Positions 14,171 to 39,414 of a stretch of 39,414 bases of DNA are shown here, piece after piece. The position numbers and the translations under genes are program-made. The DNA is from Octopus bimaculoides (taxonomy: Eukaryota), in the NCBI RefSeq assembly GCF_001194135.2, contig NC_069002.1:36346608-36386021 (forward strand), in the 5' to 3' direction. Below the pieces are notes generated by a model. It did not search any database. It was given only the letters and a program-made list of their open reading frames with translations, and was not told the origin of the DNA. Positions within the stretch are counted from its first letter, which is position 1; each line of letters starts with the position of its first letter.

Positions 14171-14218
<48 letters not shown>

Positions 14219-14440
14219 TGTGTGTGTGTGTATGTATACGTTTATGTGTCTGTGTTTGTCCCCCACCACCATCGCTTGACAACCGATGTTCGTGCTTTTA
14301 CATCTCCCTAACCTAGCGGTCCAGCAAAAGAGACCGATTGAATAACTACTAGGCTTTAAAAGAATAAGTCCTGGGGTCGATTTGTTCGACTAAAGGCGGT
14401 GCTCCGGCATGGCTGCAGTCAAATGACTGAAAGAAAAGAA
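13391..14440 (+). mobile_element. SINE family B copy with internal (TA)/(TG) microsatellite (contains a 595-N gap)
   Basis: Head GGCTGTGTGGTAAGAAGCTTGCTTCCCAAC...GGTTC and tail GCAGTCAAATGACTGAAA. Fragments recur at about 5110-5400, 7480-7550, 15615-15775, 19526-19660, 21945-22020, 22435-22520, 24530-24660 and 37090-37245. Confidence 0.8.
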
Positions 14441-14608
14441 TAGTAGAATGTGAAATAAAAACCAAGGGATAATCTGAAATAAATCAACAGCACAGTTTAT
14501 GTCTTGTTACACCTCATTGATGAATTACAATTAACCAAACAATGGTTCATATGGTAATTAGGCACTTAATAATCATCATCATGACTAAACAACTTGCGAT
14601 ACTCTATT

Positions 14609-14614
14609 TTTATT
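14609..14614 (-). terminator. Polyadenylation signal AATAAA of ICK-A
   Basis: AATAAA on the minus strand about 110 nt after the stop, within a motif conserved with ICK-B. Confidence 0.55.
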
Positions 14615-14720
14615 GAATATATACTCACGTCTGAACAAACAAAGGAATTATTGGAGCGTAAACTGAACAACAATATAATAAGATAGTCAGAGGAGTATAT
14701 AAATGTTGTGTGAAACGGAA

Positions 14721-15803
14721 TCAGCCAGATGGGGGGTTGATTCCAATATCTTCATATGTCAATTCATAACAGCGGCAGTTCGATTTCCAGAACGGGTTAC
14801 ATCTACACTCCATACCTTCACAGCAAGTATATTCTATTGTAGTCTTTTTGACAGTGCATGTCCATTTATATATTGCACATTTAATATCACGTCTTTTAGC
14901 CTCTCTATAAATACAGAAAATATGAACAGACTAATAAATACAAAAGTTACCGACAGAAGCAGCATCAATAGTATGAGGCACTCTTTATATCATTTCTAAC
15001 GTGGATGTATCATTTGGTTCTTCTTTGAGGAAAAAATCTTCGATCGAGACCAAAAGTCTAACGAGTGAAATGACAGGCGGTTATGCACAAATCCTTCTGA
15101 AGTCTCTGGAATGTTGCACACTAAATCTCTAGCGACTAAGATGGATTTGAGATTAGGGAATAACAGAGGATATACCATGCCACACCCCATTTTTCTACAG
15201 GGTCTTATAAGTTATGTTGTTGGATATGCTGGAATACTGCAGACAGTTATTAAGCCCAGGTGGATATACTGTGCGCTGGAATGTCAAACGAATATCAACA
15301 AGACACAGCACCAACACGAAGAACCCAAAAATCCAACAACAGATGTCAGACAATAAATACGATCATGTAAAACCGAAGTTGTGGTCACCAGACTCTCCGG
15401 ATTAAAAATCTCATGGATTATTACGTTTAGGGTACTGTTAAAAAAGGAGACTAATCGATATGTTCACAGTACCATAGCTTTATTGAATGTTGTCTTGAAA
15501 GAATATGGACCATTTAGTACAGGTACGCCAACTATTCCAATCTGCATTGAAGCAGTCATCGAAGTTAACGGCGGATTGATAAAAGTAATCATATAAAACA
15601 GTTAATCGATAACACATCTTTTATCTTTTACTTCTCTCAGTCATTAGAATCCGGCCATGCTGGGGCACCGCATTGAAGCATTTTAGTCGAGCTAGTCGAA
15701 CCTAGAACTGCTGATTCTGTCAGACTCATTGCCGAACCGCTACGTGACAGCGACATAAACGCAGACACAATGACATACATGCACATACAAATGCACAAAT
15801 GTG

Positions 15804-15876
<73 letters not shown>

Positions 15877-18499
15877 GTGTGTGTCTGCGTGTGTGTGTGT
15901 GTATATGTGTGTGTGTGTTTGTGTTTGGTTATAGATTTATATAAGTACAGGTTAATTGGAAGTATCAATATATATTTAGTTACTACCAATAAAAACAGAT
16001 CGAAAATAAGCGTAGGTAAGACTAACTTATCATCAGTCTACGAATAAATATTTCGCCAACAGCTCTAACACAAATACAAATGTCATAGTTATAATCGTTC
16101 ACTCCCAAAGCTAGATGGCCGTTCATGGCTCTCATGGACCGACGTCCTTTGCTGAGTGTTGTTTTTTCGTCCATCAAGGTGTCTATTCACCCACTTCACT
16201 AGACTTGATTGGGGAAATTTTGGACACGAACAAATCTGAATTGAGTGAGGCAACCTACGTAAATGAAAGATGAGTCGGCGAAAGAGAAAAGCGAGTGGGA
16301 ATAAAGACTAGAAATAATACAGATGAGTGTTTCATTGTGTGTCCAGTATACGGCCGCAATTATGCACTGACTTTGGTCTCAGATCTCACCTGAATGTACA
16401 CAAATGAACAAAGTGCTAGGTTGGATTTTATCAACCATGATAGTCGACCAACAACAAAAAGTTATACTCGAAGTAATAAAAGTCTTACCTATTTAGCGAA
16501 CCATCGACAGGTTCCCGAGCACTGAGAGCAGCTTCATCATGGACTGATATATAAGATAAGCTTTAAGATTAGATTTCGGTTTACCAGCAGAATGTTTCAA
16601 AATATTCACATGAATAGTATAGCAACAATTTAGTAATTTATTTTTAAATATACTCTACCAGAAAATCTGAAGGGAAATTTGTGAAGCAGAGACTCATTAT
16701 CTTCTTTCATACATACATACATACATACATACATGCATACATACATACATAAGTACACTAACTACATACTGAGAAATAGATATATACATGCATACACTCA
16801 TTATAAACTAAGAGAATGAGAGAGGTGGAGATAGTGTCTTGGGTAAGCAATCGAGATAAAAACAGAAATAGAATTTTGCCGTTGCACCACTTTCTTGACT
16901 TTCATACAGGGAAACTAACCAATAATGAATTGTAAAAGGCGCTGTAAAAAAACAAAATAATCATCCAACTATATTCTAGAAGGATTAAACACGGAAAACT
17001 GGAGTATTCAGTGCCTCTAAGTCGTTTAGGTTACAAATGTATTGGTGAGACATCGAGGTAAAAGAGTGATAGAAATATTTATAGATAGATAGATAGATAG
17101 ATAGATAGATCCATTCATTCATTGTGTGAGATTGATAGATAGCATTTCTTATTGGGAAGAAAGTGACTTATTACAATTCAAAAGCTTTCTTTAGAGAAAT
17201 TTTTAAAAATAAAAACGGAGTTTCATCATTAGTTTTCCATCTGTAATCAACTTACCTATTTTAAAAGATGAAATTTGATGTCTTCGAAAATTGTAGCTTA
17301 ACTGCTTTAAATATCCTGTTGAAGAACACAGACAGACAGAAAGACAGGCAGACAGGGAAGCAGACAGACAGAAGAGTGCGAGAGAAGAGGCGAGTTGCAA
17401 ACAGAACCTGATTTTCTGTTACAGGTAGAAATATTTCGCAAAAATTATTATAGCGATTCCTTTGTAACTGAAAATAGTGAACTTCAGTAGAACATCATAT
17501 TTTACTCTAGCGCTATTTTCTTTACCTTCTTTTCGACCTATGTGCTCGGATGTGTGTGCGTGTGAAGAGTCTGAAGAAATATCATAGAAATCTGTTTCCA
17601 ACGCCCCTAACTTCTTTATTGCCCACAAGGGGCTAAACATAGAGGGAACAAACAAGGACAGACGAACGGATAAAGTCGATTAAATCGACCCCAGTGCGTA
17701 ACTGGTATTTAATTTATCGACGCCGAAAGGATGAATGGCAAAATCAACCTCGGCAGAATTTGAACTCAGAACGTAACGGCAGACGAAATACCGCCAAGCA
17801 TTTCGCCCGGCGCGCTACCGATTCTGCCAGCTCGTCGCCCTCATTTAAACAATAATTGTGAAAACAAGAATAAAAGTGAAAAATGAAACGAATATGATTT
17901 TGGCACTGGTCTTTGCCCGTCATTTGACTGAAAAGTTGTTGCTGTTGGCACTCCGTCGCTAACGACGTCGAGAGTTCCAGTTGATCCGATCAACGGAACA
18001 GCCTGCTCGTGAAATTAACGTGCAAGTGGCTGAGCACTCCACAGACACGTGTACCCTTAACGTAGTTCTCGAGGATATTCAGCGTGACACAGTGTGACAA
18101 GGCTAGCCCTTTGAATTACAGGTTCAACAGAAACAGGAAGTAAGAGTGAGAGAAAGTTGTGGTGGCAGAGTACAGCAGGGTTCGCCACCATCCCCTGCCG
18201 GAGCCTCGTGGAGCTTTAGGTGTTTTCGCTCAATAAACATTCACAACGCCCGGTCGGAGAATCGAAACCGCGATCCTATGACCGTGAGTCCGCTGCCCTA
18301 ACCACTGGGCCATTGCGCCTCCACTGACTGAAAAGTAAGCACAGAAAATAGAGACAATTCCATTATATCACTCTCCTTCTTCTCCTGCCAGTACCCCTTC
18401 TCAAGTTACAAGGTCCATGTAGTACTTACCTAACTTATACGTTAAGACGTTTGAAAGTAGCACACAGTACCAAAAGCAGAGAACAAGGAGTGTTTTCAT
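14721..18499 (-). CDS. ICK-A: secreted agatoxin-like (inhibitor cystine knot) peptide precursor, 4 coding exons, 117 aa
   Basis: Exons 18499-18430, 17570-17526, 16543-16489 and 14904-14721. All introns are GT-AG with compatible phases 1,1,2 (donors GTAAGT, GTAAAG, GTAAGA). Spliced product: MKTLLVLCFWYCVLLSNVLTYKL-DSSHAHTSEHIGRKE-VHDEAALSAREPVDGSLN-REAKRR/DIKCAIYKWTCTVKKTTIEYTCCEGMECRCNPFWKSNCRCYELTYEDIGINPPSG*. It has a hydrophobic signal peptide, a KRR site, C-x6-C-x10-CC-x4-CxC-x7-CxC, a terminal Gly, and AATAAA about 110 nt past the stop. Confidence 0.8.
15000..15595 (+). mobile_element. Tc1/mariner transposase relic in ICK-A intron 3
   Basis: Reads LWSPDSPD-L..MDYYV*G.VKKETNRYVHST...CIEAVIEVNGG, the C-terminal DDE/D motif WPPNSPDLNP.DY..WG, with frameshifts. 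Confidence 0.75.
17585..17843 (-). mobile_element. SINE family A copy
   Basis: Head GGCGACGAGCTGGCAGAATCGGTAGC...GAGTTCAAATTC. Other copies at about 1121-1220 (+), 12415-12620, 12930-13115, 26600-26820, 31640-31795, 33410-33580, 36810-36950 and 38349-38548 (+). Confidence 0.8.
17937..18324 (-). mobile_element. Full-length tRNA-derived SINE with 12-bp TSD, in ICK-A intron 1
   Basis: tRNA-like head GGAGGCGCAATGGCCCAGTGGTTAGG...GTTTCGATTC. TSD TGACTGAAAAGT at 17925-17936 and 18325-18336. Confidence 0.85.
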
Positions 18500-20807
18500 C
18501 ACGTCACCTGTTAATATACAAAGTCAACAATCAGAGATATTGATAGATGTATATGTATGATGCATTTGCTACGTTGCTAGAGTTCGCATAACCACAACGG
18601 GGAAAACATGGAGCTAAAATTTAAGTGTTTTATATTTTACTGTTCTGCTTGGCTGCGTCCAATAACTGGCGATGAAATATATATGAACGACATATTACTC
18701 TTTAGATAATCAAAATTGAGTCTTCCCTATAAAGAAGAAATATGTTCCGAACGAACAGATGCTACAATACTGTAATTTGCATAAGCACGACGTTGAAAAA
18801 TAGACATCGAGCAGTGAAAAACAAACAAAAGTGTCGCATATTTTTTTGGTTAAGTTCGGTTGCTTCCAATAAGCAAAACAAGACATGGATGAACATGTGT
18901 GTAAAATATATAACACTATAATCATGTGTAAATACAACGCACCGGAATCGAACTCAGAATCTTGTGACCGCAACACCCTAACCACAAGCCACGCTTTTTC
19001 ACATAAAGTATTTCTATATTATACTATGTAAATATGTAGAACTACATATAGATGAAAATAAAAATTGGTATATATATATATATATATNNNNNNNNNNNNN
19101 NNNNNNNNNNNNNNNNNNNNNNNNNNNNNNNNNNNNNNNNNNNNNNNNNNNNNNNNNNNNNNNNNNNNNNNNNNNNNNNNNNNNNNNNNNNNNNNNNNNN
19201 NNNNNNNNNNNNNNNNNNNNNNNNNNNNNNNNNNNNNNNNNNNNNNNNNNNNNNNNNNNNNNNNNNNNNNNNNNNNNNNNNNNNNNNNNNNNNNNNNNNN
19301 NNNNNNNNNNNNNNNNNNNNNNNNNNNNNNNNNNNNNNNNNNNNNNNNNNNNNNNNNNNNNNNNNNNNNNNNNNNNNNNNNNNNNNNNNNNNNNNNNNNN
19401 NNNNNNNNNNNNNNNNNNNNNNNNNNNNNNNNNNNNNNNNNNNNNNNNNNNNNNNNNNNNNNNNNNNNNNNNNNNNNNNNNNNNNNNNNNNNNNNNNNNN
19501 NNNNNNNNNNNNNNNNNNNNNNNNNGGGTTTCAATTTCCGTCTTCGAAATTCACTCACAAGTCTTTGGTGGGCCCAAGGCTATTGCAGAAGACACTTGGC
19601 CAAATGATATTGAACTCGGAACCGCGTGAGTGGTAAGTAAACTTCTTACCTCGCCCGCGCCTATTAATATATTGTAGATAACAAGGAGACTACGTAATGA
19701 ACAAATTTCAGTGTAAAGATAAATGTAAACTTCTCGACGTAAAATACACAAGGACCTATCATTAAATATTAGAACATAGAAAAAGAACCGATGTAATCGA
19801 CTTAACCCTTCCCCACGAAGTTGCTGCCCTTGTGCCAAACTTTGAAACCAACATGTGTTTTAAAGCTGTCACTTACTCTGTTGTATTTTTTGCTGAACCG
19901 CAAAACAGGGGAACTCCACAAACCAACACCAGTTGCCAAACGGTGTGGGGATAAAACACAAAGACAAAGGCGCAAATATATGCATTCGAGAATGGAAGTT
20001 AACGGGCTTTTATAGTGGATCACGACGTACGTTTCTGCACCCCGCATCAGCTTTATGTTGACGGGTTTATTAATTTTAATGATTTCTATGCATTTGAACA
20101 TTATCCAACAACAGCTGTCTGCGGTAGTTTTCAGTGAAGTACGCGATTTTTACTCAAATTACACCAAGCAAATATATATATATATATATCTGTAATTACA
20201 CTTTAAGCTTCCATACGGTTTCCAAATAGACACTCATACCTGCGTCTACACTGGCATTACTAACTTACACACAGAACCAAAAATTATAATTTATACCAGA
20301 CCTTTTTGTTGTATCCGTCCTTTTGAATCAAATTACGTTGTGTAAATCTGACTGCGTCTTCAGAATTCTTTTAAACAAGAATCAAATACGTTCATGTTAC
20401 GTCGACTGTCTGAAAATGACCCTCCCATTAAACCCCATTTAGTTCAACCGTTCCCAACTTTCTTTAAGTGTTACGACTTCTTTTTTTTTTTACAGTCAAC
20501 ACCATGTAGAGAGCCAGATGATTAATTACTTATTAGTTAATGAGAGCATTGTTTTTTTATTGTCATCGTACCTGTGTTAATTAGTAATTAAAAAGTCACT
20601 TTAATGTATAATCTTGTTTATGTTTTTAACGTGTATCTGCCAACTACGCAAGCTATTAAAATATGAGAAACGACAACATAATGGCCATCATTGAGTATAG
20701 ATTATTCGACAACCAGTCCTGTTGTTCTTCAGAAGTATATCATCAGGAATCAAGGTGACTATAGCCAGCATCATTTTACCTACGACAATCATGTTTTGTG
20801 CCATATT

Positions 20808-21409
20808 GGATCTTTTTTAAAACGGGGGCCACATTTTTCATTAATGTTTTACGTAGTGTTTTTGGTACCGAAAGACTTTCAAACTTCGTATACTTCTCTA
20901 TTTTGTGTTATAGAACAGAAAAATATTTTTGTATTCGAATTTGTTTCATGTAAAAAGTTGTCTTATTTCGATAATTTCAACCAATCACTGACGTCCATTC
21001 AGCCGATATACATTAAGTGCCGACTACATAAACAAACGATTCTTCGTTTTATTTGCTTTTTTCACTTTAAATTTGCTTTAACCCTAACCCTAACCCTAAC
21101 TCTAACCCTAACCCTAACCCTAACCCTAGGGTTAGGGTTAGGGTTAGAGTTAGGGTTAGGGTTAGGGTTAATTGTTTCAGAATCGTTTGTTTATGTAGTC
21201 GGCGCTTAATGTATATCGGCTGAATGGACGTCAGTGATTGGTTGAAATTACAGAAATACGACAACTTTAACATGGAATAATTTATGGATTTCTTTTTTTT
21301 TAAAGAAGACTAAGAGAAAAAGATGTTTTATATGACACATTCTACCAGTGTTCCAAGTTTCAAAGTGTTTCGTTAATGAAAAATGTGGCCCCCGTTTTAA
21401 AAAAGATCC
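20808..21409. mobile_element. 602-bp non-autonomous DNA transposon (MITE) with 37-bp perfect TIRs and 8-bp TSD
   Basis: TIR GGATCTTTTTTAAAACGGGGGCCACATTTTTCATTAA at both ends. TSD GCCATATT at 20800-20807 and 21410-21417. An internal inverted repeat of about 100 bp flanks a telomeric palindrome. GG termini with an 8-bp TSD fit Merlin; hAT and P also give 8-bp TSDs. Confidence 0.85.
21079..21170. repeat. Palindromic interstitial telomere-type repeat
   Basis: (TAACCC)3 TAACTC (TAACCC)4 TA (GGGTTA)3 GAGTTA (GGGTTA)3. Confidence 0.9.
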
Positions 21410-21559
21410 GCCATATTTATTTCTGTAATTTCCTTGTTTCGGTCATTAGACTGCATTAGTGTGTGGGCATGAAATTAATAAGTGTGTGTAATTACTTACA
21501 TATATGAGTGTAAGGGCGCTTTTGTGCGTGTGTGCGTATGTTTGTGTGCGTGTGTGTTT

Positions 21560-21602
<43 letters not shown>

Positions 21603-22929
21603 ACTGAGAGGGAGATAGAGAGGCTATCTGACGTATGCGTGTTTTGTAGGAGGGTGAAGGTGAGACGACCTAGATGGCAGTGTCAGGTTGGATGAAAATA
21701 TATAAATCTCATATAAAGTAGCAAAACCGTAATACTATAACAATTAGAAATATATTAATTATAATGTTAAATAAGGGCAATTAGAGGGTACTTAAAACCA
21801 TATACAAATACGAACTAAAAATTATAAATTCCTTTAAATATATATATATATATATTTACACACATATTTACACACATATTTACACACATATATACACACA
21901 TATACATACGTATATACATATATAAGTGTATTTTTATTCTTTTACTTATTTCAGTAATGTAGATTGCAGCCATGGTGGAGCACCGCCTTAAAGGGTTTTT
22001 AGTCGAAGCAATTGACCCCACATATACACACATGCCTTTATGTGTATGTGCATATAGACAGTTAATGATAAGGCCCAATTAATGAGGAAATATGAAGGCC
22101 GCCTTCCGATTGTGACTTCAAGACACGCAACAATGTCATTTTGCCATTCATCTCTCTTTGGTCTATAAAATATGTACAAATGAAGAAGTAGTTTGAGAGT
22201 CATCGATTAACCTTTCCACTCAACGCTGGTGGCTCTGTGTCTTCTGAAATTCGAAACAATAATTGGATGTGATATGATGAAGCTCTCTGACCATTGGTGT
22301 ATGATAGCTTCATCCAGTTCATATGAAATCGGAGTTACACATTTCATCTTGAGCGTAAGTAATGGCTCTGGTCTCAAATGGAGTATAACATGTTGGGGCA
22401 AGAATTTTGGTGCATGCCGCAGAGAAAGATCTTTTACCTTTTATTTGTTTCAGTCATTTGAATGCGGCCATGCTGGGGCACTTCCTTACATCGAGCGAAT
22501 CGACCCTAGGCCTTTTCATAAGTACTTATTCTAGCTTACTCATTTGTTTAATCGCTAATGTAGAATCTTGAAGATATTTTTAGACAGTTACTGAATACCG
22601 TCCCACATTTAGAGCAAAATCGACATGCATACATTTTTTGCTGGTATCTGACGTATACCTAGAATATACCTGAAGATCATCGATTCTTCGCCTAGATTTC
22701 TCTTGCCGAGATTAGTCACTGACATCTCTAATAGACAAAGAAAATAGTGAGACCGTTAATTAATAGAGATACGTAATATTATGCTCTGTCAGAAAGTGTT
22801 GTATTTGTAAAGATATCGGTTACATAATTTTCTGTGTGGGAATCATATGCCACATGTGTTTAGCATCAAACAATCATGTTTATTCAGGTGTGTGTTTGAT
22901 ATCAATGCAACATATTGACACAATATACA

Positions 22930-23082
22930 GTGAAATGTGAAGGAAAGATTGATTTGGGATATAGAAAATAGAGAAAATACTTTCGTTTGGGTACATTTCA
23001 CATACAACATTCCGTCAAATGGAAATTGACAAACCTCACATAATTGCTTGGGACATAGTTATAGAAGCCAGAGGCTTTTGAA
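22930..23082 (+). promoter_or_regulatory. Putative promoter and non-coding exon 1 of ICK-C
   Basis: Block conserved in the paralogues, with a TATA-like TATAGAAAA and a donor GAA/GTAAGA at 23083, about 290 nt before the signal exon. Confidence 0.5.
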
Positions 23083-23382
23083 GTAAGAACATTTCATTCA
23101 CAGTTAACAGAATCGAGAATATTTATGGACAAATGCTTCGAAGACATCATCATCACCTAAATTAAATATTTACATTAGTACTTTTGTTGGAATTAAATTT
23201 GCTGTATTACTAATTGTTTAAACGATAATGTTATAAAACTTGAATTTTCAGCGAAATGAAATTGGATAGAGAAAATATCATTGTTACCTAAATTTCAGCT
23301 GTCGACCTTTGCTTCTTTGTAAGAATAAAGCTTCCGTTTTTAATTACCTTATTTGTTATATTTCTTTATCAGCAGGTGCGTG

Positions 23383-25111
23383 ATGAAAGGCATCAGTGTC
23401 TTATTGTTTTGTGCATTCATTTCATACAGCTTCTCCGATGAACAAAGTAAGTATAATCAGAAACCTCTTTTACTTTATAGTCATCAGATATGTAGTGGGA
23501 GAAAAGGGGGAAAATAGAAATGTGGAAAGAAGAAAAATGAATAACGTTATCTCAGCGGTCTTTCGTATGTACCCCATTTATATGTAATTACAGCTTTCAA
23601 ATAGATAACTCTATTTATGTACATTACTCATTGACCAAATGTTCAGAATTACGATTCTTCAATATAATATAACACATTTAATTAACGATGGCTGGCTAAT
23701 TCTTTATGTACAAATCGGGAAGAATTCTAGTGAAGTGCTGCCATCTGTTACTCCCATATAAGATCAGAACGTAAGCACGGACGAAATGACACTAAGCATA
23801 TCGTCCGTCGAAGTAATGATTCTACCAGTTCGCCACTGCCTTTAGGACTCTTAATTATTAAAATCATTACAGTATAGACTCAGCAAGTGCTATATATAAT
23901 GTTTCATGTGTTTGTTTTGTTTTGCTTTGTTGTCCTTCCATATTTTATGACTGCGTTGGTTTTTATCTCTTTTACGTATTACAAATACCCGTCACTACAA
24001 TGATGAGCAATGTGAAGTGTCTTTGTGAGGGAATATGAGTTTGAGTCGTCATGGTTCTGCATCTTACTTCAGATGATGTTATTATAAATACATCATCCTC
24101 TATTTTATGAATTATCTATTGAGTGCTACTTGAGGATTTTGGGTATTTCTACACAAAATTTTGGTAAATGGATATTTAATTCTTCAATATGTATTTTAAT
24201 ATCTCTTTCAGATGTCACTTCCGTCCATCGACAGACAACAGCTAATGTAAGTTTGAATAACATGACTCATAGGTAAGAACTACATATCTACATCTGTTAT
24301 CGAAGTAATAATAGACTAACACCCTCAGTAAGGTTTCATGGCTTATGCCGTAGTAGAGAGGTCATTAGTATTGGGGCAATCCTATTCTTAAGACTGTTTC
24401 CAAATTATAGTTTTTGCGCAAAAGAAAATGTGAAACGGAAAATATGATTGAAAAAAAAATCTTCATGAGTAAAAGTTGAATATTTGTTTATACTTTGCCT
24501 ACAAAGTAATTTAACAGTTTATTCAGATATAGGCGCAAGTATGGCTGCCTGGTTAAGAAGTTCACTTCGCAACGAAAAAGTGTGAGGGTTTAATCCCTGA
24601 ACATGTGTCTTCTGCTATACCCTCAGCCCGATCTATACTACCTCAATGGATGTGATTGAATGGAATTCTATAATATATATCTACTAGGGAGACCCGTGGA
24701 AATTCCACAGAATTGAAAAAATAATTTACGAAAGAAAAGACGATTTGCATTTTTATAGCATTCATAGTTAAGCGTTCTTTAAATATCCTTGACGTTCGTC
24801 TACATTCATTTCCTCCCGTCTCCGTCGGTGTTGTCTTTTCCTCTTTTTATCATATTTTCTTGCTGTCCCTCTCTGATCTGTGTTCGATATCTGTGCATCC
24901 TTTCTCGGGCAGCGTGTTTCCTCTGTATAAACTTTTATAAACAAATATCAAATTTTAAGCGAGCAGACGATAAATAATTGCACTTATGCGTTAAACGATG
25001 GTCACTTTGAAAAAAAAAATTCGTTCAATAAAACAAAAATTCGTTCAATAAAAAAATAATACTTTTCATTATCAACACACCACCATCACCGCCGCCACTG
25101 TCGCTATCTGC

Positions 25112-25197
<86 letters not shown>

Positions 25198-25322
25198 ATA
25201 ACTACCTCACCTGTCCATCCCTCTCTTTCTACCTTTCCCTTCAGCTAACTTTTTAATCACGTAATAAGTATTCCTTCCCCACCCCACCGCACATCGTTAA
25301 CACGTCTCTTTCTCTCTCTCTC

Positions 25323-25359
<37 letters not shown>

Positions 25360-25679
25360 CGTCTAATCCTTTCCCTTGAAAATTCCTGCCCTTCTCCCTA
25401 AACGAGAAACCATAATTTAATGACTTATTTCCTACCATATTCTGTATTTACAGTGGCAAGTGTAAGAGAACCCTATGTTCAATGTATGAGTGTAACCGAT
25501 ATTTGACAGACAAGAATTGCTGCCCAGGTGTGAATTGTCATTGTAATTTACCACAACGGATATGCATGTGTAGTTCACAAAATATCATCTATGGGACTCA
25601 TAACAGTATACTCCAAAGTATAATTGCTCTTCCCATTTTTCTTGTAAATTTACATCTTATTGACGTTCTGTTCTTGTGA
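23383..25679 (+). CDS. ICK-C: knottin precursor with hydrophobic C-terminal (GPI-like) tail, 3 coding exons, 116 aa
   Basis: Exons 23383-23446, 24212-24272 and 25454-25679, with phases 1 and 2 and donors GTAAGT and GTAAGA. Product: MKGISVLLFCAFISYSFSDEQ-NVTSVHRQTTANVSLNNMTH-SGKCKR/TLCSMYECNRYLTDKNCCPGVNCHCNLPQRICMCSSQNIIYGTHNSILQSIIALPIFLVNLHLIDVLFL*. Confidence 0.8.
25104..25355 (+). repeat. (CT)n tracts in the ICK-C last intron
   Basis: Seen directly. Confidence 0.95.
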
Positions 25680-25854
25680 ATCTTGTGGATAAATTTCATG
25701 CATCAGATTCTTTTTATACAAGGAGAAAAATCGATGAAATCACGAAGACAAAATATTTGTTTTAGGTAAGAATTTAGAACTGTAATACATACAGAAACCA
25801 AAGGAAACAGGCAAATATCAAAAGTATATTCAACTACAAAAACATCAACTAGTG

Positions 25855-25866
25855 CTGTTGCTGCTG

Positions 25867-25930
<64 letters not shown>
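25855..25930 (+). repeat. (CTA)n microsatellite 3' of ICK-C
   Basis: Seen directly; its homologue is the (TAG)n tract 3' of ICK-D. Confidence 0.95.
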
Positions 25931-27551
25931 ATCTTCAATTTTAAAACTAACTCAATTATCAAATCCTATATCAAAAGAATACTACGAATAAATTTCATGA
26001 AACAAAGTGAAATATTAAATATTAACGAGCAGAAGTTTGATTTTGTAATTTATCCCTGAAAGAAATTCACGGATGTTGTACCAAAAACTGAAAAGGTAAA
26101 GAAGAGAGAATGAGCAAAACATAACCTACCATTATGACATTTCTAAAACCCCTAAATTAGCAGACATGGTTCTTGCATTGTATTACTCATATTTTTTTTA
26201 ATAAAACGTTGTTTGTGCAAGCAATTAAAACTTCTTTCTTGTCTAGTGTTAACTAATTCAATTTTCAAAGTAAATATTTGATATAATTCTTCTAGGCACA
26301 AATTGCATTTTTCGTTCCCTATTTTCTAAACTAATAACGGGGAGAATTACTCCTTGAACAATGGCTGAAGAGATCGTACAGATTATGCATAAATCCCTGC
26401 GTATAAATATGAAGAAATTTGCAATTGATACAATCGAAATACGTGTCGGACAATTACTATAAATAAACCAAACAGAAAGTCTGAATGTTCAAATTCTTTG
26501 TTTCCCTTATTATTAGAGAGTGTGGGGGTGAGTTTGTGTGTGTGTGTGTGTGTGTGAATTTGCCTGTCTGTATGTTAGTGTGTTTGTATACACGTATTTA
26601 CGCATAATTGTAAAGAGTGATCTAGCGGAACGTTTCGCACACCGGTGCTGCTTAACGGCACATCATCCGTCTTTATGTTCAGAGTTCAAACGCTGCCCAG
26701 GTCGACATTACCTTTCATCACTCTGGGGTTGATAAAATAAGTACCAGTTGAGCACGGCGCTTGATATAATCGATTTACTCAATCACCGAAACCTTCTGGC
26801 CTTGTGCCCAAAATATGAAACACACACACACACGTGTGTGTCTGTGTGTGTAAGCGTCTGTATGCCAGTAGGTATGTCTTTTACATATATGCATATGAGT
26901 GTATGTATAGATAGAGATAGAGAAGACTAAGAGATAGGTGAATAAGAATATGAATTGGCACGCGTATGCATGTTGTTAAAATATTAGCTTCACAATCCCA
27001 CACTTTTGTCAGAAATACGGGAGGGGCACAAGCGGAAATCTTACTGAGTCGTCCAGTATAGCTTAATTTTTGTATTAATTCCATAATGCTTGCAATGGAC
27101 TTAATGTATACGAGACGTTATACTTCATGCTTATCCTCTTCCTATATTTCAAAATAACCTGAAAAGCCCGAGTCAGTACAACTGTTGTAGGTCCAAGTTA
27201 GACTACTTTGTTTATCTACCTTATCGGAACTCTTATGCTTTTCTAACACAATATTCCATACTAGACTTTTATTTGATTTATTATAGTGTCGGAAACTAAA
27301 TTAATATAGTGCAGAAGAGTCCATATAATTTTCATCTGTGGCTAACTTGTCTCTACTTTGACGTTTCTCTTTCAGGTGGTATTATATGTACTCGTATCAT
27401 TCTTCCTCAGAAATCTGAAAAGTAGGCGGTTTATTGCAAGTGCTGTTGCGTGAAGTGTCTTTCATTTCTTAATCAATACTGAAGATTTAACTTGGCCAAA
27501 CACCACACTGATGCTTGTATCTTTCTATGAGTCAATCACATGAACTTTTAT

Positions 27552-27843
27552 ATATTTTAGTCATTAGACTGCGGCAAATCTGAAGCATCATCTTGAAGAA
27601 GTTTTGTGCCAAAATGTCGAATGAATTTTAAATCTTGGTTATCATTTATCGGAAGGTGATGATGAATTGTTAAGTTACGGGGACGTAAACACACCGATTA
27701 CGTTTGTGAAACGCTGGGCAGGGGAAACAAACACAGACACAAAAGACATATATGTATATACATGCATGCATGCATACGTACATACATACATACATGAATA
27801 CCTACATACATGCATACATACATATATACATAGTGTGTATGTA

Positions 27844-27893
<50 letters not shown>

Positions 27894-28040
27894 GGGCTTC
27901 TTTCAGTATTTCCTCTACCAAATCTATTCTCACCATGGTTTGATTTACCCGTGGCTAAATACTTGTCCAAAATGCCAAGCAGTTGGACTGAACTCGAACT
28001 CGGACCATGTGGTTAGGAGGCAAACCTCTTACCACACACC
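27552..28040 (-). mobile_element. SINE family B copy with internal microsatellite
   Basis: Reverse complement of the 13391-14440 family, with an (AT)n/(CATA)n core. Confidence 0.7.
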
Positions 28041-29336
28041 CACTTTGATCTTCGGATATCTTTAAAATATTTCTTTTAAATCACTGCCAGTACAGAAATC
28101 TGATTTACTTGAATTGTGTCCCACCTATAATTTATCTCACCAGATAAAATCAAATGCAGGATGGTGATATCTGTGTTATATATGACACCGCAACGAAATT
28201 TCTATCCTTTTTTTTTTTTTATCTTTTGATAGTGATATTTCCTATTTACTTCCATCTAGAAATCAATGGAAATTGACTTCTATTCCCTTCAAACTTTGCT
28301 TTCGTGACCTGGACATCAACGTTTTCAAAGTGATCTATTTTCTATTATATTTTAGACAGATTCAGCGCTGAGTTGTAGAAACAGACATATTGTTATAGCT
28401 AATATTCTGATCAATACCACACATTTGTTGTTTAGTTATTTGACCTTGTCCACTTGAACATGTCCTTTAGTGGCTTACAATATGCGCATCTCTGATAATG
28501 AGCAGGAGTAGTGAGTGAGTATCAATGCCATATGATGAAAGGGGATTTTTGGAGTGTGAATCAATGTAAGAAAAACAAAGTCTGAAGGAAATATTAATCC
28601 TTTTTCATAGTTTCTAGAGAAAAGCAAAGAGGAAACAGAAGTTGTTACCCAAGGACAAAAATAGTGCTACACACTGTTACGATTTATGGACGTTAATGAA
28701 AGAAGCCAGATTTTCTATGTATAGCGAAAAGTGGGGAATGCTGGAACCATATTTATCGTTTTTTTGTTTCCTTGCTTTTCTTTTCTTATCTCTCTATTTT
28801 CCTGTTTCTTTTTTCTTAAATGTTATAATGTAGAACTTGCCGAATATTCTGGTTTTTACAATATTTATAGTGTGACACTCCAATGTAAATCTTACCATCC
28901 ATATCCGAAACTTAAAAGCAAGAACCACAGCGAAGAACGAAGCACAAAGAATTCGTTACGTTCAATGACGTAAAAACAAATAGGACAGCGAAGAACAAAG
29001 CACTAAATATTTGTAATAGTTTGATAAATTAATTTAATTGGAATTTCATTAAAATTTCACGGATTAATAGCATAAATATATGAGATATTTGATGCGATTG
29101 TCGTACAAAATTAAGGGTTGTTAGGAAACTCATGTTTGTTGGTTATTGTTTACATATTTTCACTTCTTTTACCATTTCCGCTCTTGGTCAACATACGTGA
29201 ATCTCTTTCCAGGATAAATTACAAAAATCAAACTTCTGCTCGTTAATATTTTATATTTCACAGTCTTTCTTGATGTTTATTCAAAGTGTTATATTGTTAT
29301 AGGATTTGATAGTTGAGTTAATTTCAAAAATTGAAA

Positions 29337-29338
<2 letters not shown>

Positions 29339-29413
<75 letters not shown>

Positions 29414-29443
29414 TCAGCAGCAGCAGCAGTAGTAGTAGTAGTG

Positions 29444-29480
<37 letters not shown>

Positions 29481-29800
29481 NNNNNNNNNNNNNNNNNNNN
29501 NNNNNNNNNNNNNNNNNNNNNNNNNNNNNNNNNNNNNNNNNNNNNNNNNNNNNNNNNNNNNNNNNNNNNNNNNNNNNNNNNNNNNNNNNNNNNNNNNNNN
29601 NNNNNNNNNNNNNNNNNNNNNNNNNNNNNNNNNNNNNNNNNNNNNNNNNNNNNNNNNNNNNNNNNNNNNNNNNNNNNNNNNNNNNNNNNNNNNNNNNNNN
29701 NNNNNNNNNNNNNNNNNNNNNNNNNNNNNNNNNNNNNNNNNNAGGAGGAGGAGGATGGGGAGGAGGTAAAGTAGCAGCAGCAGCAGCATCAACAGCAACA
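29339..29800 (+). repeat. (TAG)n/(CAG)n compound microsatellite 3' of ICK-D (with gap)
   Basis: Seen directly; flank 29281-29340 is reverse-complement homologous to 25930-25990. Confidence 0.9.
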
Positions 29801-29956
29801 ACACTTAATTGATATTTTTGTAGTCGAGTGTGTTTTGCTGTGTTTGGATCCTTTTTTGTTTTTTTGGTCTGTCTTCGTGATCTCACCGATTTTCTCCTTG
29901 TATAAAAACCAATCTAACGTATGACATTTATCCACGAGATTCACCAGAGCAGAACG

Positions 29957-32511
29957 TTAATAAAATGGTAAATTTACAATAGAAATGAGAAAAACTATTA
30001 CAGTTTGGAGTATACTGTTGTTAGCCACCTGGGTGATATTTTGAGAATTACAAAGACAGATACGGAAACGTTTACATCGACATCTGGTACCTGGGCAGCA
30101 AGCATATTGTGGTGTGTATGAGCTTCTGTCACAGTAAAGTTCGTTACAGCGCCCATGTCTCTTAATCTTCTTACTGTAAATACAGAATATGATAGGAAAC
30201 AGAATATATTATTAAATTAAGGTGTCTCGTCGAGGGAGAAGGCAAAAAATATTGGTTTTTAAAATAAAATATATTAGATATATATAAGGATCTCTTCTAG
30301 GGACCCTATTATCGATGTCTTCAACAATCTGAGTATGCCATAAGGTTCCATGAGGTTTCTAGACATGAGTTCTACTCACGTGTCAAGTTTCATCAAAATC
30401 GATAAAACGATGTAGGAGGAGTTAGCTAACAAATCCACAAACACACCCACAGATAGAACTTCCCACCTATGTAGTAGATTATATATATTCGAAACGTTTG
30501 TCCGTAAATAATTCTCCATTCTGTTTACTGAGAATGAAATGTTCTTACTTCAAGGATATCTGGCTTGTATAACTATGATTTTTATTTCTGTCCCAAACAA
30601 TTCGCATTTGACGGAACGCTATATTTGAAATGTACACAGTCAAAAGTATTTTCTCTATTTTCTATAACCAAAATCAGTCTTTCCTTCACATTTCAATGTG
30701 CATTGTGTATACATGTTGCACTGTTACCTGGATAAGCATAACCGTCTACTGCTAAACACATGTGTCATATGATCCTCACACAGAAAATCATGAAATCGTC
30801 ATCTTTACAAATATAGAACGTTCTGAAAGAGCATAATTTTACGCATCTGTTTTAATTGATGACTTCTCTCCTTTATCTCTTAGTGATTTCAGCTACTAAT
30901 CTCGGCATGGAAGAACTCGAAAAAGAATCGATGAACAGGTACTCCAGGTATTCGTCTCATACCAGAAGAAATTAATGCATGGGTAAATGATACATTTCAG
31001 GGCTCAGGACAGGCCACAGTGGAGTGCTGCTTTCACATCTGGGACGATGCTGTTCCTATATACACAACTGTCTTAGAACCGCATCCAGAGAAAGAGTATT
31101 TGACTTATCGGAATAAAATTATTCACAGATGTGCTCCAGCTTCATCCCCACAAGCATGTTCTTTCCTTCCTCCGTCTTTTCTGGCGCTACTAAACGTAAA
31201 ATGGCGTCTGACTCTGAATTCGCTTCCACCCAGGCGTTCTCATCTTATTCATCTTTCTTCTTTTCATCATTCTATTTGTGTCCAAACCTCAGGCCCAGCA
31301 GTAATTCCTACACCCAGTCCTTCCTTCCCAGGATATCAACTTCATGGAACTTTCTCCCTGTTCATACCTTTTCCGTAAGTGTTCACTTACAAAGTTTCAA
31401 GATGAAAGTGATGACAAAAATTTTGTAGGCAAAATATAAAAAAATATTATTTAATTTTTACTTATGAAAATAATTTTCTCTTCGATAAATCTCGCTTCAT
31501 ATCTTCCCCTTTCCGAGTTTCTGTTATGCAGAAACTAAAATTTAGAAACAGTCTCAGAATTTGAATTTGCCAATACGAATAACTTTTCTATCATAGACTC
31601 AAGGCCTGAAACGTTGATGGAGGGCGCTACTCCCTTACATAAGATCCTAGTTCTCAACCAGTAATTATTTCATCGACCCAGAAATGATGCAAGATGCAGT
31701 CAACATAGGCGAAATTTCAACCCAAAACAAAGCCGGAAGTAGTGACACAAAGTATTTTATCCAGAATGTTAATGATTCTGCCAGCTTACCGCCTGGGCAA
31801 TATTAAGTTAATTACATAATTATAAGAGATACAGATATGTAGTTCTTACCTNNNNNNNNNNNNNNNNNNNNNNNNNNNNNNNNNNNNNNNNNNNNNNNNN
31901 NNNNNNNNNNNNNNNNNNNNNNNNNNNNNNNNNNNNNNNNNNNNNNNNNNNNNNNNNNNNNNNNNNNNNNNNNNNNNNNNNNNNNNNNNNNNNNNNNNNN
32001 NNNNNNNNNNNNNNNNNNNNNNNNNNNNNNNNNNNNNNNNNNNNNNNNNNNNNNNNNNNNNNNNNNNNNNNNNNNNNNNNNNNNNNNNNNNNNNNNNNNN
32101 NNNNNNNNNNNNNNNNNNNNNNNNNNNNNNNNNNNNNNNNNNNNNNNNNNNNNNNNNNNNNNNNNNNNNNNNNNNNNNNNNNNNNNNNNNNNNNNNNNNN
32201 NNNNNNNNNNTATAAAAGATTAGTCAGTCATTTTGATAATTAAATGTTACATATTATATTGAAGAATCTTAATTCCGAATATCTGACCTATGTGTAGAGT
32301 TATTTATTTGAAGGTTGTAATTACATATAAATGGGGTTACGTACGAAAGACCGTTCAGGTAACGTTATTCATTTTTCTTCTGCCCCCCTTTTCTCCCACT
32401 ACATATCTGATGACTATAAAGTAAAAGAGGTTTCTGATTATACTTACTTTGTTCATCGGAGAAGCTGTATGAAATGAATGCACAAAACAATAAGACACTG
32501 ATGCTTTTCAT
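29957..32511 (-). CDS. ICK-D: knottin precursor with hydrophobic tail; middle exon lies in an assembly gap
   Basis: Signal exon 32511-32448 reads MKSISVLLFCAFISYSFSDEQ (63/64 nt identical to ICK-C). The donor AG/GTAAGAACTACATATCT at 31851-31833, matching the ICK-C pro-exon donor, abuts the gap 31852-32210. Last exon 30173-29957 reads KKIKR/HGRCNELYCDRSSYTPQYACCPGTRCRCKRFRICLCNSQNITQVANNSILQTVIVFLISIVNLPFY*. Confidence 0.7.
30490..30890 (-). promoter_or_regulatory. Orphan copy of the ICK promoter and exon 1 inside the last intron of ICK-D
   Basis: Homologous to about 22730-23140 and retains the donor GAA/GTAAGA at 30548. No signal exon follows it. Confidence 0.5.
30895..31380 (+). mobile_element. 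CR1-type LINE 3' fragment in the ICK-D intron
   Basis: Across frameshifts: RAQDRP.VECCFHIWD...LD.RIQRKSI.LIG...SYTQSFLPRISTSWNFLP, the typical CR1 ORF2 C-terminus. Confidence 0.75.
31852..32210. other. Assembly gap (N run) expected to contain the ICK-D propeptide exon
   Basis: N run. Other gaps: 3325-3456, 10151-10342, 13576-14170, 19088-19525, 29481-29742, 34330-34339, 36177-36242. Confidence 0.95.
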
Positions 32512-32836
32512 CACGCACCTAATGATATAGAAATATAACAACGGGAGTCATTAGAAACGGAATCTTTATTCCTACAAAGAAGCAAAGGTCTGCAGCTGAA
32601 ATTTAGCTAACATCTTTTCGCTGTCCAAATTTATTTCACCGAAAATCCGAGCTTTACAGCATTATCATTTAAATACTAAAGAATATAGCTAATTTAATTG
32701 CACCAATAGGTCTAATGCAAATTTAATTCCAACAAAAGTACTAATGTAAATATTTAATTGAGGTGAAGATGATGTCTTCGAAGAATTTGTCCGTAAATAT
32801 TCTCGATTCTGTTTACCGTGAATGAAATGTTCTTAC

Positions 32837-33030
32837 TCCAAAAGTATCCGGCTTCTATAAATATATGTCTGTTATTTCTGTCCCAAAAAATTATGCGAGG
32901 ATTGTCAATTTGCAGTTGGCAGAATGCTGTATGTGGAATGTACACAGTCAAAACTATTCGCTATATTTTCTATAACCCAAATCAATCTCCGCTTCACATT
33001 TCACTGTATGTTGTCCAATGCACAACAGAT
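32837..33030 (-). promoter_or_regulatory. Putative promoter and non-coding exon 1 of ICK-D
   Basis: Reverse-complement homologue of 22915-23082; donor GGA/GTAAGA at 32836. Confidence 0.5.
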
Positions 33031-36108: not shown

Positions 36109-37869
36109 TTATCGCTATTTCCCCCACAACACAAACACCGGCAGAAAAACAAACTTACGCGCGCGCACGCACACACNNNNNNNNNNNNNNNNNNNNNNNN
36201 NNNNNNNNNNNNNNNNNNNNNNNNNNNNNNNNNNNNNNNNNNATATATATATATATATATATATATACAGAGAGAGAGAGATACATATATTTCAAATAGA
36301 CCTACATATATTTCGACTGCATCGGTTAGTAAACGTTGTCGGTCCACTTTCTTTCGACAAGCAAATCGACCCTAAGCCCGTTCTCTATCGTTCTCATTTG
36401 CTAAATCTCCAAACTATGGCGATACCTGACACCCGCGTTTGGAGCCAACCACAGACGGAAATCACACGCCCACATATGTTTGTGTGTGTGTGTAATTTAT
36501 TAATGAGAGAGAGACGGAATATGGAAGAGACGAGGATCTCTATTGATCACTAGAAACGTTTCGACCCATCTAGCATCGATCCCTGGCGTATTCATTGGTG
36601 TAGTTGTATCTCCACAGGTGATTTTAATAAGTATCTCATTGAGATAATCTCCGTTTCGCAAGATGTCTTCTCGGCTTTCGTATATAGATGTGGCAAATTA
36701 AGGTATACATCTTCATTCTTATTGAACATCTATTGAGCAAATCACAGATACAATAAGAAATACATACTGAATGCAGTGAAAAAAAGTATTAGGTATCTAA
36801 TTACATCGACACCTGTCCTCAACTGGTACTTATTTTATCAACTGGGAAATGATGAACGGCAGCTGATATCGGCGGAATTTGAACTCAGAATGTGAGGACG
36901 GACGAAATGCCACTGACCATTTTGATCAGCGCGTAACCGATGCTGCCGGATCGCAGGGAAGGAATAATAAAACAAACCAACTGACACAACATACATTAAT
37001 CATTAGCAGCACGAAGAGACACACCAACCACAGTCCTGTTTATTTACTTATCACCGGTCAACATTATTTGTTATGATAACTTCTTTTATTCCTCTTTCAG
37101 TTTACTGGTTTTAGTCATTAGACTGCGGCCATGCTAGGGTGCCACCCTGAAGAAATTCAGTCGAATGAATCAACACCAGTACTTTTTTTTAAAGCCTGGC
37201 ACTTAGTGTATCGTTCACTTTTGCCAAACTGATAAGTTATGGGAGTCTAGAGTTTTTCTCTCTTACAAACAAGGATCGGCTTTCACAGAAGTTAATCAGA
37301 ACGAAAGTAAGTACTTAAGCAATCTTGTTTCGCGGCCAGTGGTTTTTCATATGTTGCTCTGATATGTGTGAGAAAACAGAATCGACATTTAACCGTGATA
37401 TATGGAAATAATTCTACATTATTTCAAGAAAAATGAGGAGACGATTTTTGCATGGGATTGATTCTTTCATAGGAGTATGCGCGGTATTTCATATGTGAAG
37501 CTAGTTGCACAATATAAGGTAGTTATAAATAAAATGTCATTGACCCTGTGCCTTATGGATTAGGAATGACCTGGATTTAAGCAACAATTTGGATTTTCAC
37601 AGCGACTTTTAGGAATCAGTATATGTTGGCATGTGATAAACAACATTTGTGTTATAATCTCAAATTTTGACATCTCCGAAGGGGAACATTGGCATAAGTG
37701 AGGACATAAATTCTGATATAGTTTGAAATGACGTTTTTTTCTCATTACTAAATCACATATCTGTCGAACTACATAACTTAGTAAATACTGAATCACATCG
37801 TATAAATCATGCTCTTGATATATGTGTGTGCGTGTGTACGTATTTATGTGTGTGTATTTGTGTGCATGT

Positions 37870-37950: not shown

Positions 37951-38348
37951 TGTGAAGAAAAGATAGAAACAATAAAGTGTGAAAATTGAGAGAGAAGAAA
38001 GCAAAAGCTGGAATAACGAAGGGTTGAAGCTGTTCAGTAAGTTACTAACAACATACAAACATCATCAACCAGCTTGAATATTGCACAAGAGAAAGTTAGA
38101 GAGTGTTTTATATAAATACCGTTCTTAATATAACAAGTATGTAGCATTTAAATTATTCATTATGGCTGTATGTAAATTAGTGATAACAATATAAAGAGTA
38201 TGTTATGGTAATGATGATGGTGGTAGTGGTAGAGCTTAATTTGTTTGTTGCCGGTTTGCATGTGTACAGTTCAAGAACCGCAAAGAGAATAGGCGGAATG
38301 TTTTACAAATTTCCACTTTATATCTCATCGGTTGTATTTGGAAAATGT

Positions 38349-38548
38349 GAGGCGGTGAGCTTGCAGAATCGCTAGCACGCCGGGCAAAACGCTTCGCGGT
38401 ATTTCATCCGCCGCTACGTTCTGAGTTCAAATTCCGACCAAAGTCGACTTTGCCCATTATCATTTTGGGTTCGATAAATTAAGTACCAGTTGAGTACAGA
38501 TGTGGTCGACTGTCCCCCTCCCTGCAAAATCCAGGCCTTATGCCTATA
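38349..38548 (+). mobile_element. SINE family A copy upstream of ICK-E
   Basis: GGCGGTGAGCTTGCAGAATCGCTAGC...GAGTTCAAATTC...GATAAATTAAGTACCAGTTG. Confidence 0.75.
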
Positions 38549-38974: not shown

Positions 38975-39046
38975 TTGACAAGCCTCACATACTTGTTTGG
39001 GACAGAAATAAAAATAATGTTACTACAGAAGCCAGATACATTTGAA
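38975..39046 (+). promoter_or_regulatory. Non-coding exon 1 of ICK-E
   Basis: Homologous to exon 1 of C and D, with donor GAA/GTAAGG at 39047. Homology stops upstream of about 38975. Confidence 0.45.
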
Positions 39047-39371
39047 GTAAGGACATTTCATTCATAATTAACAGAATCGAGAATATTTACGGACAAATTC
39101 TTCGAAGACATCATCTTCACCTCAATTAAATATTTACATTAGTACTTTTGTTGGAATTAAATTTGCATTAGAACTATTGGTGCAATTAAATTAGCTATAT
39201 TCTTTAGTATTTAAATGATAATGCTGTAAAGCTCGGATTTTCGGTGAAATAAATTTGGACAGCGAAAAGATGTTAGCTAAATTTCAGCCGTAGACCTTTG
39301 CTTCTTTGTAGGAATAAAGCTTCCGTTTCTAATGACTCCCGTTGTTACATTTCTATATCATTAGGTGCGTG

Positions 39372-39414
39372 ATGAAAAGCATTAGTGTCTTATTGTTTTG
39401 TGCATTCATTTCAT
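39372..39414 (+). CDS. ICK-E: signal-peptide exon, truncated by the window end
   Basis: Acceptor TTAG/GTGCGTG then ATG; reads MKSISVLLFCAFIS. Near-identical to the ICK-D signal exon and intron 1. Confidence 0.7.
   Translation, partial: MKSISVLLFCAFIS

Follow-up and report, generated by a model that had tools for sequence, protein, structure and literature searches.

The knottin genes C and D, found in a stretch of 39,414 nt from Octopus bimaculoides (NC_069002.1; AT-rich, microsatellite-rich and interrupted by eight assembly gaps; hereafter the window), encode precursors that continue beyond the last cysteine of a toxin-like core into a tail with a hydrophobic C-terminus. This tail is shared by a subfamily of O. 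bimaculoides knottins, and its best single reading would be, as judged from sequence, a signal for a glycosylphosphatidylinositol (GPI)-type tether, to which we assign a probability of about 0.35. The precursor consists of a signal peptide, an N-glycosylated pro-region ending in K-R, a hypervariable agatoxin-like core with eight cysteines and a C-terminal extension of about 30 residues, an architecture common to many paralogues. The tail, described for C and D in an earlier note on this DNA, is confirmed and is broader than reported there; a natural cell-tethered toxin-like peptide is a plausible prediction.

A six-frame scan of the window revealed four cysteine-rich exons, A to D, which share the acceptor ttctgtatttacag. 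Both tail sequences previously given for C and D are present exactly as described, and exons A and B end, as was also claimed, in short polar tails with a terminal Gly (HEVYNEHLGIAPIG and YELTYEDIGINPPSG, each followed by the stop), which include EHLGIAP and EDIGINP. Octopus proteins were the only matches in a profile search against 1.84 billion representative proteins and in a further search by word index. The word-index search with exon C alone missed a protein that contains this exon, and the full-length predicted D precursor as query retrieved the family, with two O. bimaculoides RefSeq proteins, isoforms X3 (P0001) and X2 (P0002) of LOC128250541. Seven further O. bimaculoides RefSeq proteins (LOC128250513, 514, 516 with two isoforms, 517 and 536) are encoded on the same 37.7-Mb chromosome and all end in the same kind of tail; eight RefSeq models, which represent seven genes, count the tail among their coding sequence. 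Four of these loci (L002-L005) contained additional unannotated copies, giving with C and D a total of nine intact tail-bearing knottin exons and one pseudogene fragment. The fragment (L003 12339-12503) belongs to the LAILY subgroup, carries a stop in its core and has no acceptor.

The tail extends for about 30 residues after the eighth cysteine (C8), with the consensus SSQNMIHVTNNGILQTVIAFLIFLVNLPSY before the stop, and is composed of a polar 12-residue linker (SSQNxIHVxNNG) followed by the uncharged hydrophobic end ILQTVIAFLIFLVNLPSY. It is read in the same frame in the nine intact exons and the pseudogene, and the position of the stop is common to all but C. In 12 of 12 tails the best-kept positions are 11 (N, but T in two), 12 (a small residue), 15 (Q) and 16 (T or S), a pattern that would suit an Asn-directed enzyme, either transamidase or legumain. 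Stops directly behind C8, which the earlier note had taken as the mark of neutral read-through, were seen in none of the nine intact O. bimaculoides exons. Of the 720 open stretches in the six frames of the window that span 30 codons or more and end in a stop, a chance sample from which the few coding exons were not removed, only 2-3% finish with 18 residues this hydrophobic. The suggestion that AT-rich untranslated sequence yields a hydrophobic tail by default thus fails as a default and holds in so far as a short, mostly hydrophobic stretch can arise in this way, as it did in the frameshifted ending of C. Spread of the tail as a repeated mobile element was ruled out, as the D copy is the sole match inside the window.

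In the published description (PMC9997660; PMC6726743), a GPI-anchored precursor begins with a signal peptide, is cleaved at an omega site and continues past this site with 5-10 residues of hydrophilic spacer, after which 15-20 hydrophobic residues close the chain. The N-terminal signal claimed earlier is present as a signal-peptide exon in each gene (beginning MKGISVLLFCAFISYSFS); by eye, the exons of C (23383-23446) and D (32511-32448) encode signal peptides of the form MK(G/S)ISVLLFCAFISYSFS. The terminal hydrophobic stretch amounts to 23 residues in C, counted from ILQS to the end and including one Asp, and to 19 uncharged residues in D; it measures 16-19 residues in the paralogues, with P0007 as an exception in which 10 were detected. 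No charged residue occurs in the hydrophobic end of eight of the nine intact exons, the Asp of C being located in its frameshifted end, and the stretch is interrupted by Q15, T/S16, N26 and P28. It forms the extreme C-terminus, so no cytoplasmic residues follow. The summed insertion energy over 19 residues is about +2.6 to +6.8 on a hydrophobicity scale. On this scale a transmembrane anchor in place of GPI is unlikely, as the positive energy indicates an end too weak for a stable transmembrane helix; a positive sum is typical of GPI signals.

In the proposed mechanism, the signal peptide would carry the precursor into the endoplasmic reticulum, and the marginally hydrophobic C-terminal end would hold it at the lumenal face of the membrane. 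GPI transamidase would then most probably remove this end at an Asn or a small residue of the linker, so that the knottin would remain lipid-anchored on the cell surface, and the tail-less relatives (A, B) would be freely secreted. The cluster of diffusible and tethered versions envisaged in the earlier note stands with respect to two kinds of C-terminus, as tail-less A, B and other B-type genes lie beside C and D; the tethering itself is a prediction. The most far-reaching form of the proposal, a natural Octopus family of lipid-tethered knottins with at least nine fast-diversifying cassettes displayed by Asn-directed transamidation as cell-autonomous channel or receptor modulators, would have to be called doubtful at present.

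The anchor reading is weakened by a non-canonical omega region, a UTR-like rate of change, the accidental ending of C, and the existence of tail-less and charged-tail members. Omega sites were scanned by the customary rule, with S, N, G, A, D or C at omega and G, A or S at omega+2, and a spacer of 5-10 residues (PMC9997660). For C and most paralogues, the only fitting omega residue is the last cysteine of the knot itself (C-S-S or C-N-S). This corresponds to C-S-S with a spacer of 10 residues in C and to C-N-S with a spacer of 9 in D, where N10-N-S would be an alternative with no spacer. The motif N10-x-G/S occurs in six tails, including D and the pseudogene, with a spacer of at most 2 residues in five of them and of 6 in P0007. 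The GPI-signal-like tail reported earlier is thus borne out in its signal peptide, its terminal hydrophobic stretch and its lack of a cytoplasmic tail, while its small-residue omega and spacer pattern is non-canonical. In addition, none of the family proteins turned up in the protein collection as a transcript-derived copy.

Nucleotide diversity among the eight copies that form the main (VNLP) group is 0.205 in the tail (0.224, 0.221 and 0.169 at the three codon positions) and 0.179 in the adjoining 70 nt of the 3' untranslated region (UTR), and in the six-copy set first sampled it was 0.135 in the UTR and 0.256 in the last 60 nt of the intron. The tail diverges at the pace of the UTR beside it and shows no codon-position signature; the ratio of nonsynonymous to synonymous differences (pN/pS) is about 1 among copies of the main group, and 0.45-0.7 when these are compared with the LAILY subgroup. 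The likeness of paralogue tails is no greater than that of the flanking non-coding DNA, and tail conservation could stem from a flank that is young or has been homogenised instead of from selection for the peptide. The probability that 64 or more substitution events leave no stop is 0.08-0.15, and 18 of 24 distinct variants in the hydrophobic part stay hydrophobic (59% expected; none charged; P = 0.09). Hydrophobicity is retained beyond random substitution at P ~0.02, a value obtained from sequences that are not independent. Over all constraint tests P lies between 0.02 and 0.19, and the signals for constraint on frame and hydrophobicity, which would favour the anchor, are marginal. The pseudogene fragment also keeps the tail frame open. 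Alignment of C with the family revealed that its tail residues 1-27 are homologous to the family tail and that its last eight residues (HLIDVLFL) are due to a 1-bp deletion (TTA-CCA to TTA-CA), which shifts the frame into the ancestral 3'UTR; the end of this tail is an accidental frameshift product.

Comparison with relatives gave a divided result. The O. vulgaris model P0006 (CRCSSQNMIHVANN) retains the first 11 residues of the tail, SSQNMIHVANN after C8, so that the start of the tail, if no more of it, is older than the divergence of O. bimaculoides and O. vulgaris. P0006 is a 121-kb fusion of several cassettes and as such a problem of the O. vulgaris annotation. Cross-species DNA evidence is provided by one dispersed O. 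vulgaris copy (OX597817.1, L001 10001-16576), an intact homologue with signal-peptide exon, pro-exon and eight-cysteine exon, which ends in CRCKQ and a stop and has no tail. The entire tail and proximal UTR are absent from it (about 450-800 bp in the O. bimaculoides copies), and homology resumes in the distal 3' flank; as this copy is otherwise intact, a family member can dispense with the tail. Isoform X2 of LOC128250541 (P0002) has a homologous but charged tail, VAPEVDNAILQTCHIMVSIKKTVMAELAVDDRRYG, which shares the motif N-A-I-L-Q-T. For the anchor reading, the tail start kept in P0006 is in favour, and the loss from L001 and the charges in P0002 are against. A further O. vulgaris model, P0009, is also faulty, as an internal GT takes it out of the knottin exon before the true end, CKCDKKPTDCRCKQ and the stop, is reached.

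Much of this would equally be expected if the tail were a neutral passenger, translated merely since the stop falls 30 codons past C8 and representing a functionless flank that is trimmed or tolerated, an explanation we consider only slightly less probable than the tether. It would account for a tail evolving like its UTR with no third-position excess and a pN/pS near 1 in the main group, for a core that is the sole compartment with extra divergence (pS = pN = 0.45), for the eight mostly hydrophobic residues that C gained by mere frameshift, for the open frame of a pseudogene, for a relative that lives without the tail and another whose tail is not hydrophobic, and for the marginal outcome of every constraint test. 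It is harder to reconcile with an 18-residue uncharged hydrophobic end on a secreted knottin of about 40 residues, which should be costly, and with tail codons 2 and 3 (TCA, CAA), each one step from a stop, in an exon set of which none of the nine intact members is truncated. Nor does it explain why the hydrophobic part has acquired no charged residue, why such ends occur in only 2-3% of chance open stretches, why the start of the tail was retained in O. vulgaris, or why pN/pS falls below 1 between subgroups.

Three further explanations assign the tail a different fate. A C-terminal propeptide, cleaved with no lipid anchor and serving transiently in sorting, folding or self-protection, seems unlikely; the soluble knottin would then end in SSQNxIHVxN(N), and a protease may cut behind the near-invariant Asn11, where a small and then an aliphatic residue come next. 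The motif N-[GSA]-[ILM]-x-Q-[TS] is indeed the best-kept part of the tail and is present even in the charged tail of P0002, and the precursor is already matured by proteolysis at the K-R ahead of the core, but a basic processing site is absent between core and tail. In plant cyclotide and knottin precursors, which have a short hydrophobic C-terminal tail, legumain cuts after Asn or Asp followed by a small and an aliphatic residue, and the GPI transamidase subunit is a member of the peptidase family that includes legumain; we know of no animal precedent for Asn-directed tail removal in toxin-like peptides. The evidence for constraint is as weak for the propeptide as for the GPI signal, and nothing in silico separates the two. 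With much less probability, the secreted mature peptide would keep the tail as a membrane-partitioning segment, resembling omega-agatoxin IVA/IVB with its hydrophobic C-terminal tail or the spider two-domain knottins with their C-terminal helix. The best solved relatives of the family profile are omega-agatoxin IVA/IVB and mu-agatoxin, although at E-values of 1-9, and AlphaFold2 draws the tail as one helix (residues 45-73), although with a predicted local distance difference test (pLDDT) score of about 50. The A and B tails are reminiscent of the agatoxin IV tail, but the subfamily tail is uncharged and far more hydrophobic than the known cationic or amphipathic toxin tails, and a free peptide of this kind would be poorly soluble. 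Least probable of all, and hardly to be expected, is a tail missing from the real product, owing to splicing (for example at GGTATAC/AGTATAC, codons 11-13) or lack of expression, with the RefSeq coding sequence being an automatic longest-frame call. P0006 leaves the exon exactly after HVANN, the family has no transcript-derived proteins in the collection, and isoforms that pair one leader with different knottin exons point to uncertain modelling. However, P0006 is the obvious fusion mentioned above and its internal donors are weak, all eight O. bimaculoides RefSeq models end with the tail, and both C and D are followed by an AATAAA some 300 nt further on.

Exon C is the last coding exon of LOC128250541 isoform X3 (P0001), which tblastn maps to the window at 100% identity and which was rebuilt exactly from four exons with GT-AG introns (Table 1). 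This structure, with an extra pro-exon and stronger splice sites, replaced our initial two-exon models in which the signal-peptide exon was joined straight to the knottin exon. The most upstream of the four exons is probably 5'UTR, because the paralogue models lack the N-terminal extension and start at MKGIS; if the upstream in-frame ATG of the RefSeq model of C were used, the signal peptide would be placed internally. The sequons of the pro-exon are NVT, NVS and NMT in C, and paralogues retain one or two of them.

Self-comparison of the window identified C and D as inverted, tail-to-tail duplicates, with matches of 25390-25469 to 30242-30158, 25569-25750 to 30052-29870, and 25867-26158 to 29402-29108. 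They are young duplicates and hence not independent. D keeps its stop where the family ancestrally has it, with TAA in place of TGA. A pro-exon of D was not found in the read sequence of the window and may lie in the gap at 31852-32210. No D protein was returned by the protein searches. As both pro-exon and protein are missing from these results, D may be broken or incomplete, or simply unannotated. A second gap, in the 3' flank, begins 215 nt past the stop of D and is crossed by no reading frame; the sequence on either side is collinear with the 3' flank of C, so order and orientation across it are as expected. The (CTA)n microsatellite, which causes this gap, is located at the same place of the 3' flank in several paralogues (25860-25930 in C, 29340-29480 in D, and the L002 copies).

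Table 1. Features of the knottin cluster in the window (a dot marks a feature with no strand).
Feature	Positions	Strand	Remarks
Knottin exon A	7706-7832	-	6 Cys only; tail HEVYNEHLGIAPIG, then stop; comparator
Knottin exon B	14721-14904	-	soluble tail YELTYEDIGINPPSG, then stop; comparator
Gene B leader exons	18441-18499 and 16488-16544	-	
First exon of the LOC128250541 model	20663-20754	+	tblastn of P0001; upstream in-frame ATG, 34-aa N-terminal extension
Gene C signal-peptide exon	23373-23446	+	ATG 23383; MKGISVLLFCAFISYSFSDEQ; donor AAA/GTAAGT, phase 1
Gene C pro-region exon	24212-24272	+	NVTSVHRQTTANVSLNNMTH; 20 residues; three N-x-S/T sequons
Knottin exon C	25454-25679	+	follows acceptor ttctgtatttacag at 25454
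Gene C terminal exon, first part	25454-25571	+	end of pro-region (GKCKR) and 8-Cys knottin core TLCSMYECNRYLTDKNCCPGVNCHCNLPQRICMC
Gene C tail and stop	25572-25679	+	tail SSQNIIYGTHNSILQSIIALPIFLVNLHLIDVLFL, 35 aa, 25572-25676; stop 25677-25679
Gene C proximal 3'UTR block	25680-25750	+	conserved among paralogues as much as the tail or more
Assembly gap	29481-29742	.	in (CTA)n/(TAG)n microsatellite of the 3' flank of D; non-coding
Gene D proximal 3'UTR block	29870-29956	-	conserved
Knottin exon D	29957-30173	-	exon starts at 30173
Gene D tail and stop	29957-30049	-	tail NSQNITQVANNSILQTVIVFLISIVNLPFY, 30 aa, 30049-29960; TAA stop 29959-29957
Gene D terminal exon, first part	30050-30173	-	KKIKR and knottin core HGRCNELYCDRSSYTPQYACCPGTRCRCKRFRICLC
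Gene D signal-peptide exon	32448-32521	-	ATG 32511; MKSISVLLFCAFISYSFSDEQ; boundaries by homology to the exon of C
Start of a further signal-peptide exon	39372-39414	+	MKSISVLLFCAFIS; cut by the window end; marks another C/D-type gene

The first 50 nt or so of the 3'UTR are among the best-conserved parts of the locus (25674-25725, 29910-29962 and the same block in L002-L005). A stem TGACGT...ACGTCA spans the stop codon, and both of its sides are changed in D (TAACGT...ACGTTA), which counts as one compensatory event. A conserved RNA structure behind the conservation of tail and UTR seems unlikely, as RNAalifold returned only a weak stem (-5 kcal/mol) with a covariation term of 0 and this one compensatory change. 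The hypervariable knottin core differs from its surroundings in divergence, with pS = pN = 0.45 versus 0.13-0.26 in tail, UTR and intron, which resembles accelerated divergence of the conotoxin type or gene conversion sparing the core.

As the last signal-peptide exon of Table 1 runs off the window, the cluster extends beyond it. RefSeq isoforms in the window (20663-25679, forward strand; 7706-18499, reverse strand) join one leader set to differing terminal knottin exons. In LOC128250541, X3 uses exon C and X2 a knottin exon absent from the read part of the window, and isoform X2 of LOC128250542 (P0011) uses exon A and skips exon B. This pattern is either real alternative use of cassettes or the result of mis-modelled tandem paralogues. 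Exon A is without the first two cysteines (REAKGNELFCC...) and nonetheless is the coding end of a RefSeq isoform. An interspersed repeat of about 130-150 bp is found in both orientations at 74-83% identity (12470-12607, 17675-17846, 26663-26806, 36800-36947 and 38343-38497); it matches no Rfam family, and an Rfam scan of the whole window gave no match. A repeated block of 0.5-1 kb at 22624-23613, 30488-30981, 32295-33014 and 38975-39414 lies around and ahead of the exons that encode the signal peptides of C, D and the fifth copy. The intron of D also contains a part of this block, which suggests a rearrangement or a mobile element.

The cysteine framework C-x(4-6)-C-x(7-10)-CC-x4-C-x-C-x(5-8)-C-x-C, with CC-x-G, is common to B, C, D and all paralogues (eight cysteines), exon A having six. 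In the Pfam scan Toxin_9 (PF02819; cut-off 21.3 bits) was the best match for B with 21.1 bits, reached 16.4 bits in A, and did not match C or D; the paralogues had matches to Toxin_9, Toxin_7 and Toxin_35, all sub-threshold. The family profile gave seven matches in the PDB, all of the agatoxin type (mu-agatoxin I, omega-agatoxin IVA/IVB, purotoxin-1 and delta-palutoxins) and at E-values of 1-9. AlphaFold2 models of low confidence (pLDDT 58-60) contain a beta-hairpin over C5-C8, with the tail as a single low-confidence helix. Foldseek listed J-atracotoxin, mu-agatoxin, ASIP and ACTX among its matches, all with E >1, and returned nothing useful for the full model including the tail. The earlier label of an agatoxin-type inhibitor cystine knot is thus upheld by the cysteine framework and not by a curated family, for which matches were sub-threshold; the resemblance is real at the level of the motif, and curated-family membership is not reached.

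Whether or not the tail is an anchor, these data define an undescribed knottin gene cluster, so far from Octopus only, with a conotoxin-like architecture in which conserved leader and flanks enclose a hypervariable core whose synonymous sites are elevated too, and they flag several annotation problems in two octopus genomes. Should the GPI-type tether be correct and the tail work as an anchor signal, it would be, to our knowledge and by our literature searches, the first knottin with a natural membrane tether. Those searches returned no natural GPI-anchored knottin, no octopus knottin and no mention of the family leader sequence. Tethered toxin-like modulators would then have a second, independent origin on another fold, in an animal noted for a complex nervous system and for chemotactile senses, and would provide a ready-made library of diversified, cell-autonomous channel ligands.

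Among known systems, agatoxins have the same eight-cysteine framework, whereas the octopus knottins are encoded by multi-exon molluscan genes and carry a glycosylated pro-exon and a 30-residue hydrophobic extension, both absent from agatoxins. UniProt names one B-type paralogue (P0012), and this one alone, 'Agouti domain-containing protein', and ASIP is a weak fold match; however, the agouti domain of Agouti and AgRP has 10 cysteines in another spacing, the octopus knottins have eight, and Pfam Agouti was not among the matches listed at E <= 10. Conotoxin-type precursor genes likewise form tandem clusters with conserved signal, pro-region and flanks around a hypervariable mature cassette, but they belong to another fold family and lineage, and their precursors are without a long hydrophobic C-terminal extension. 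In cyclotide and plant knottin precursors, an Asn behind the knottin leads, through a small and an aliphatic residue, into a hydrophobic tail, which asparaginyl endopeptidase removes, and the octopus tails keep N-[GSA]-[ILM]; this pathway is a plant one, with much shorter tails and backbone cyclisation, and is not known from animals. Engineered tethered toxins (conotoxins, agatoxins and designer knottins) place a knottin on a GPI or membrane tether from which it acts on channels of the expressing cell, but are artificial fusions with a borrowed GPI signal and a long linker; tethered-toxin variants appear in PMC9191634. The Lynx1/Ly6/uPAR prototoxins and Drosophila sleepless/quiver are GPI-anchored toxin-fold channel modulators to which only the proposed mode of tethering is analogous. 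They have a three-finger fold, with 8-10 cysteines in the LU pattern, and an anchoring shown by experiment, whereas the octopus proteins have a cysteine pattern of the knottin type, no LU or UPAR_LY6 match in the Pfam scan, and a proposed tether with a non-canonical omega region. If this tether is real, the octopus family would be the knottin counterpart of Lynx1, sleepless and the tethered toxins of the laboratory.

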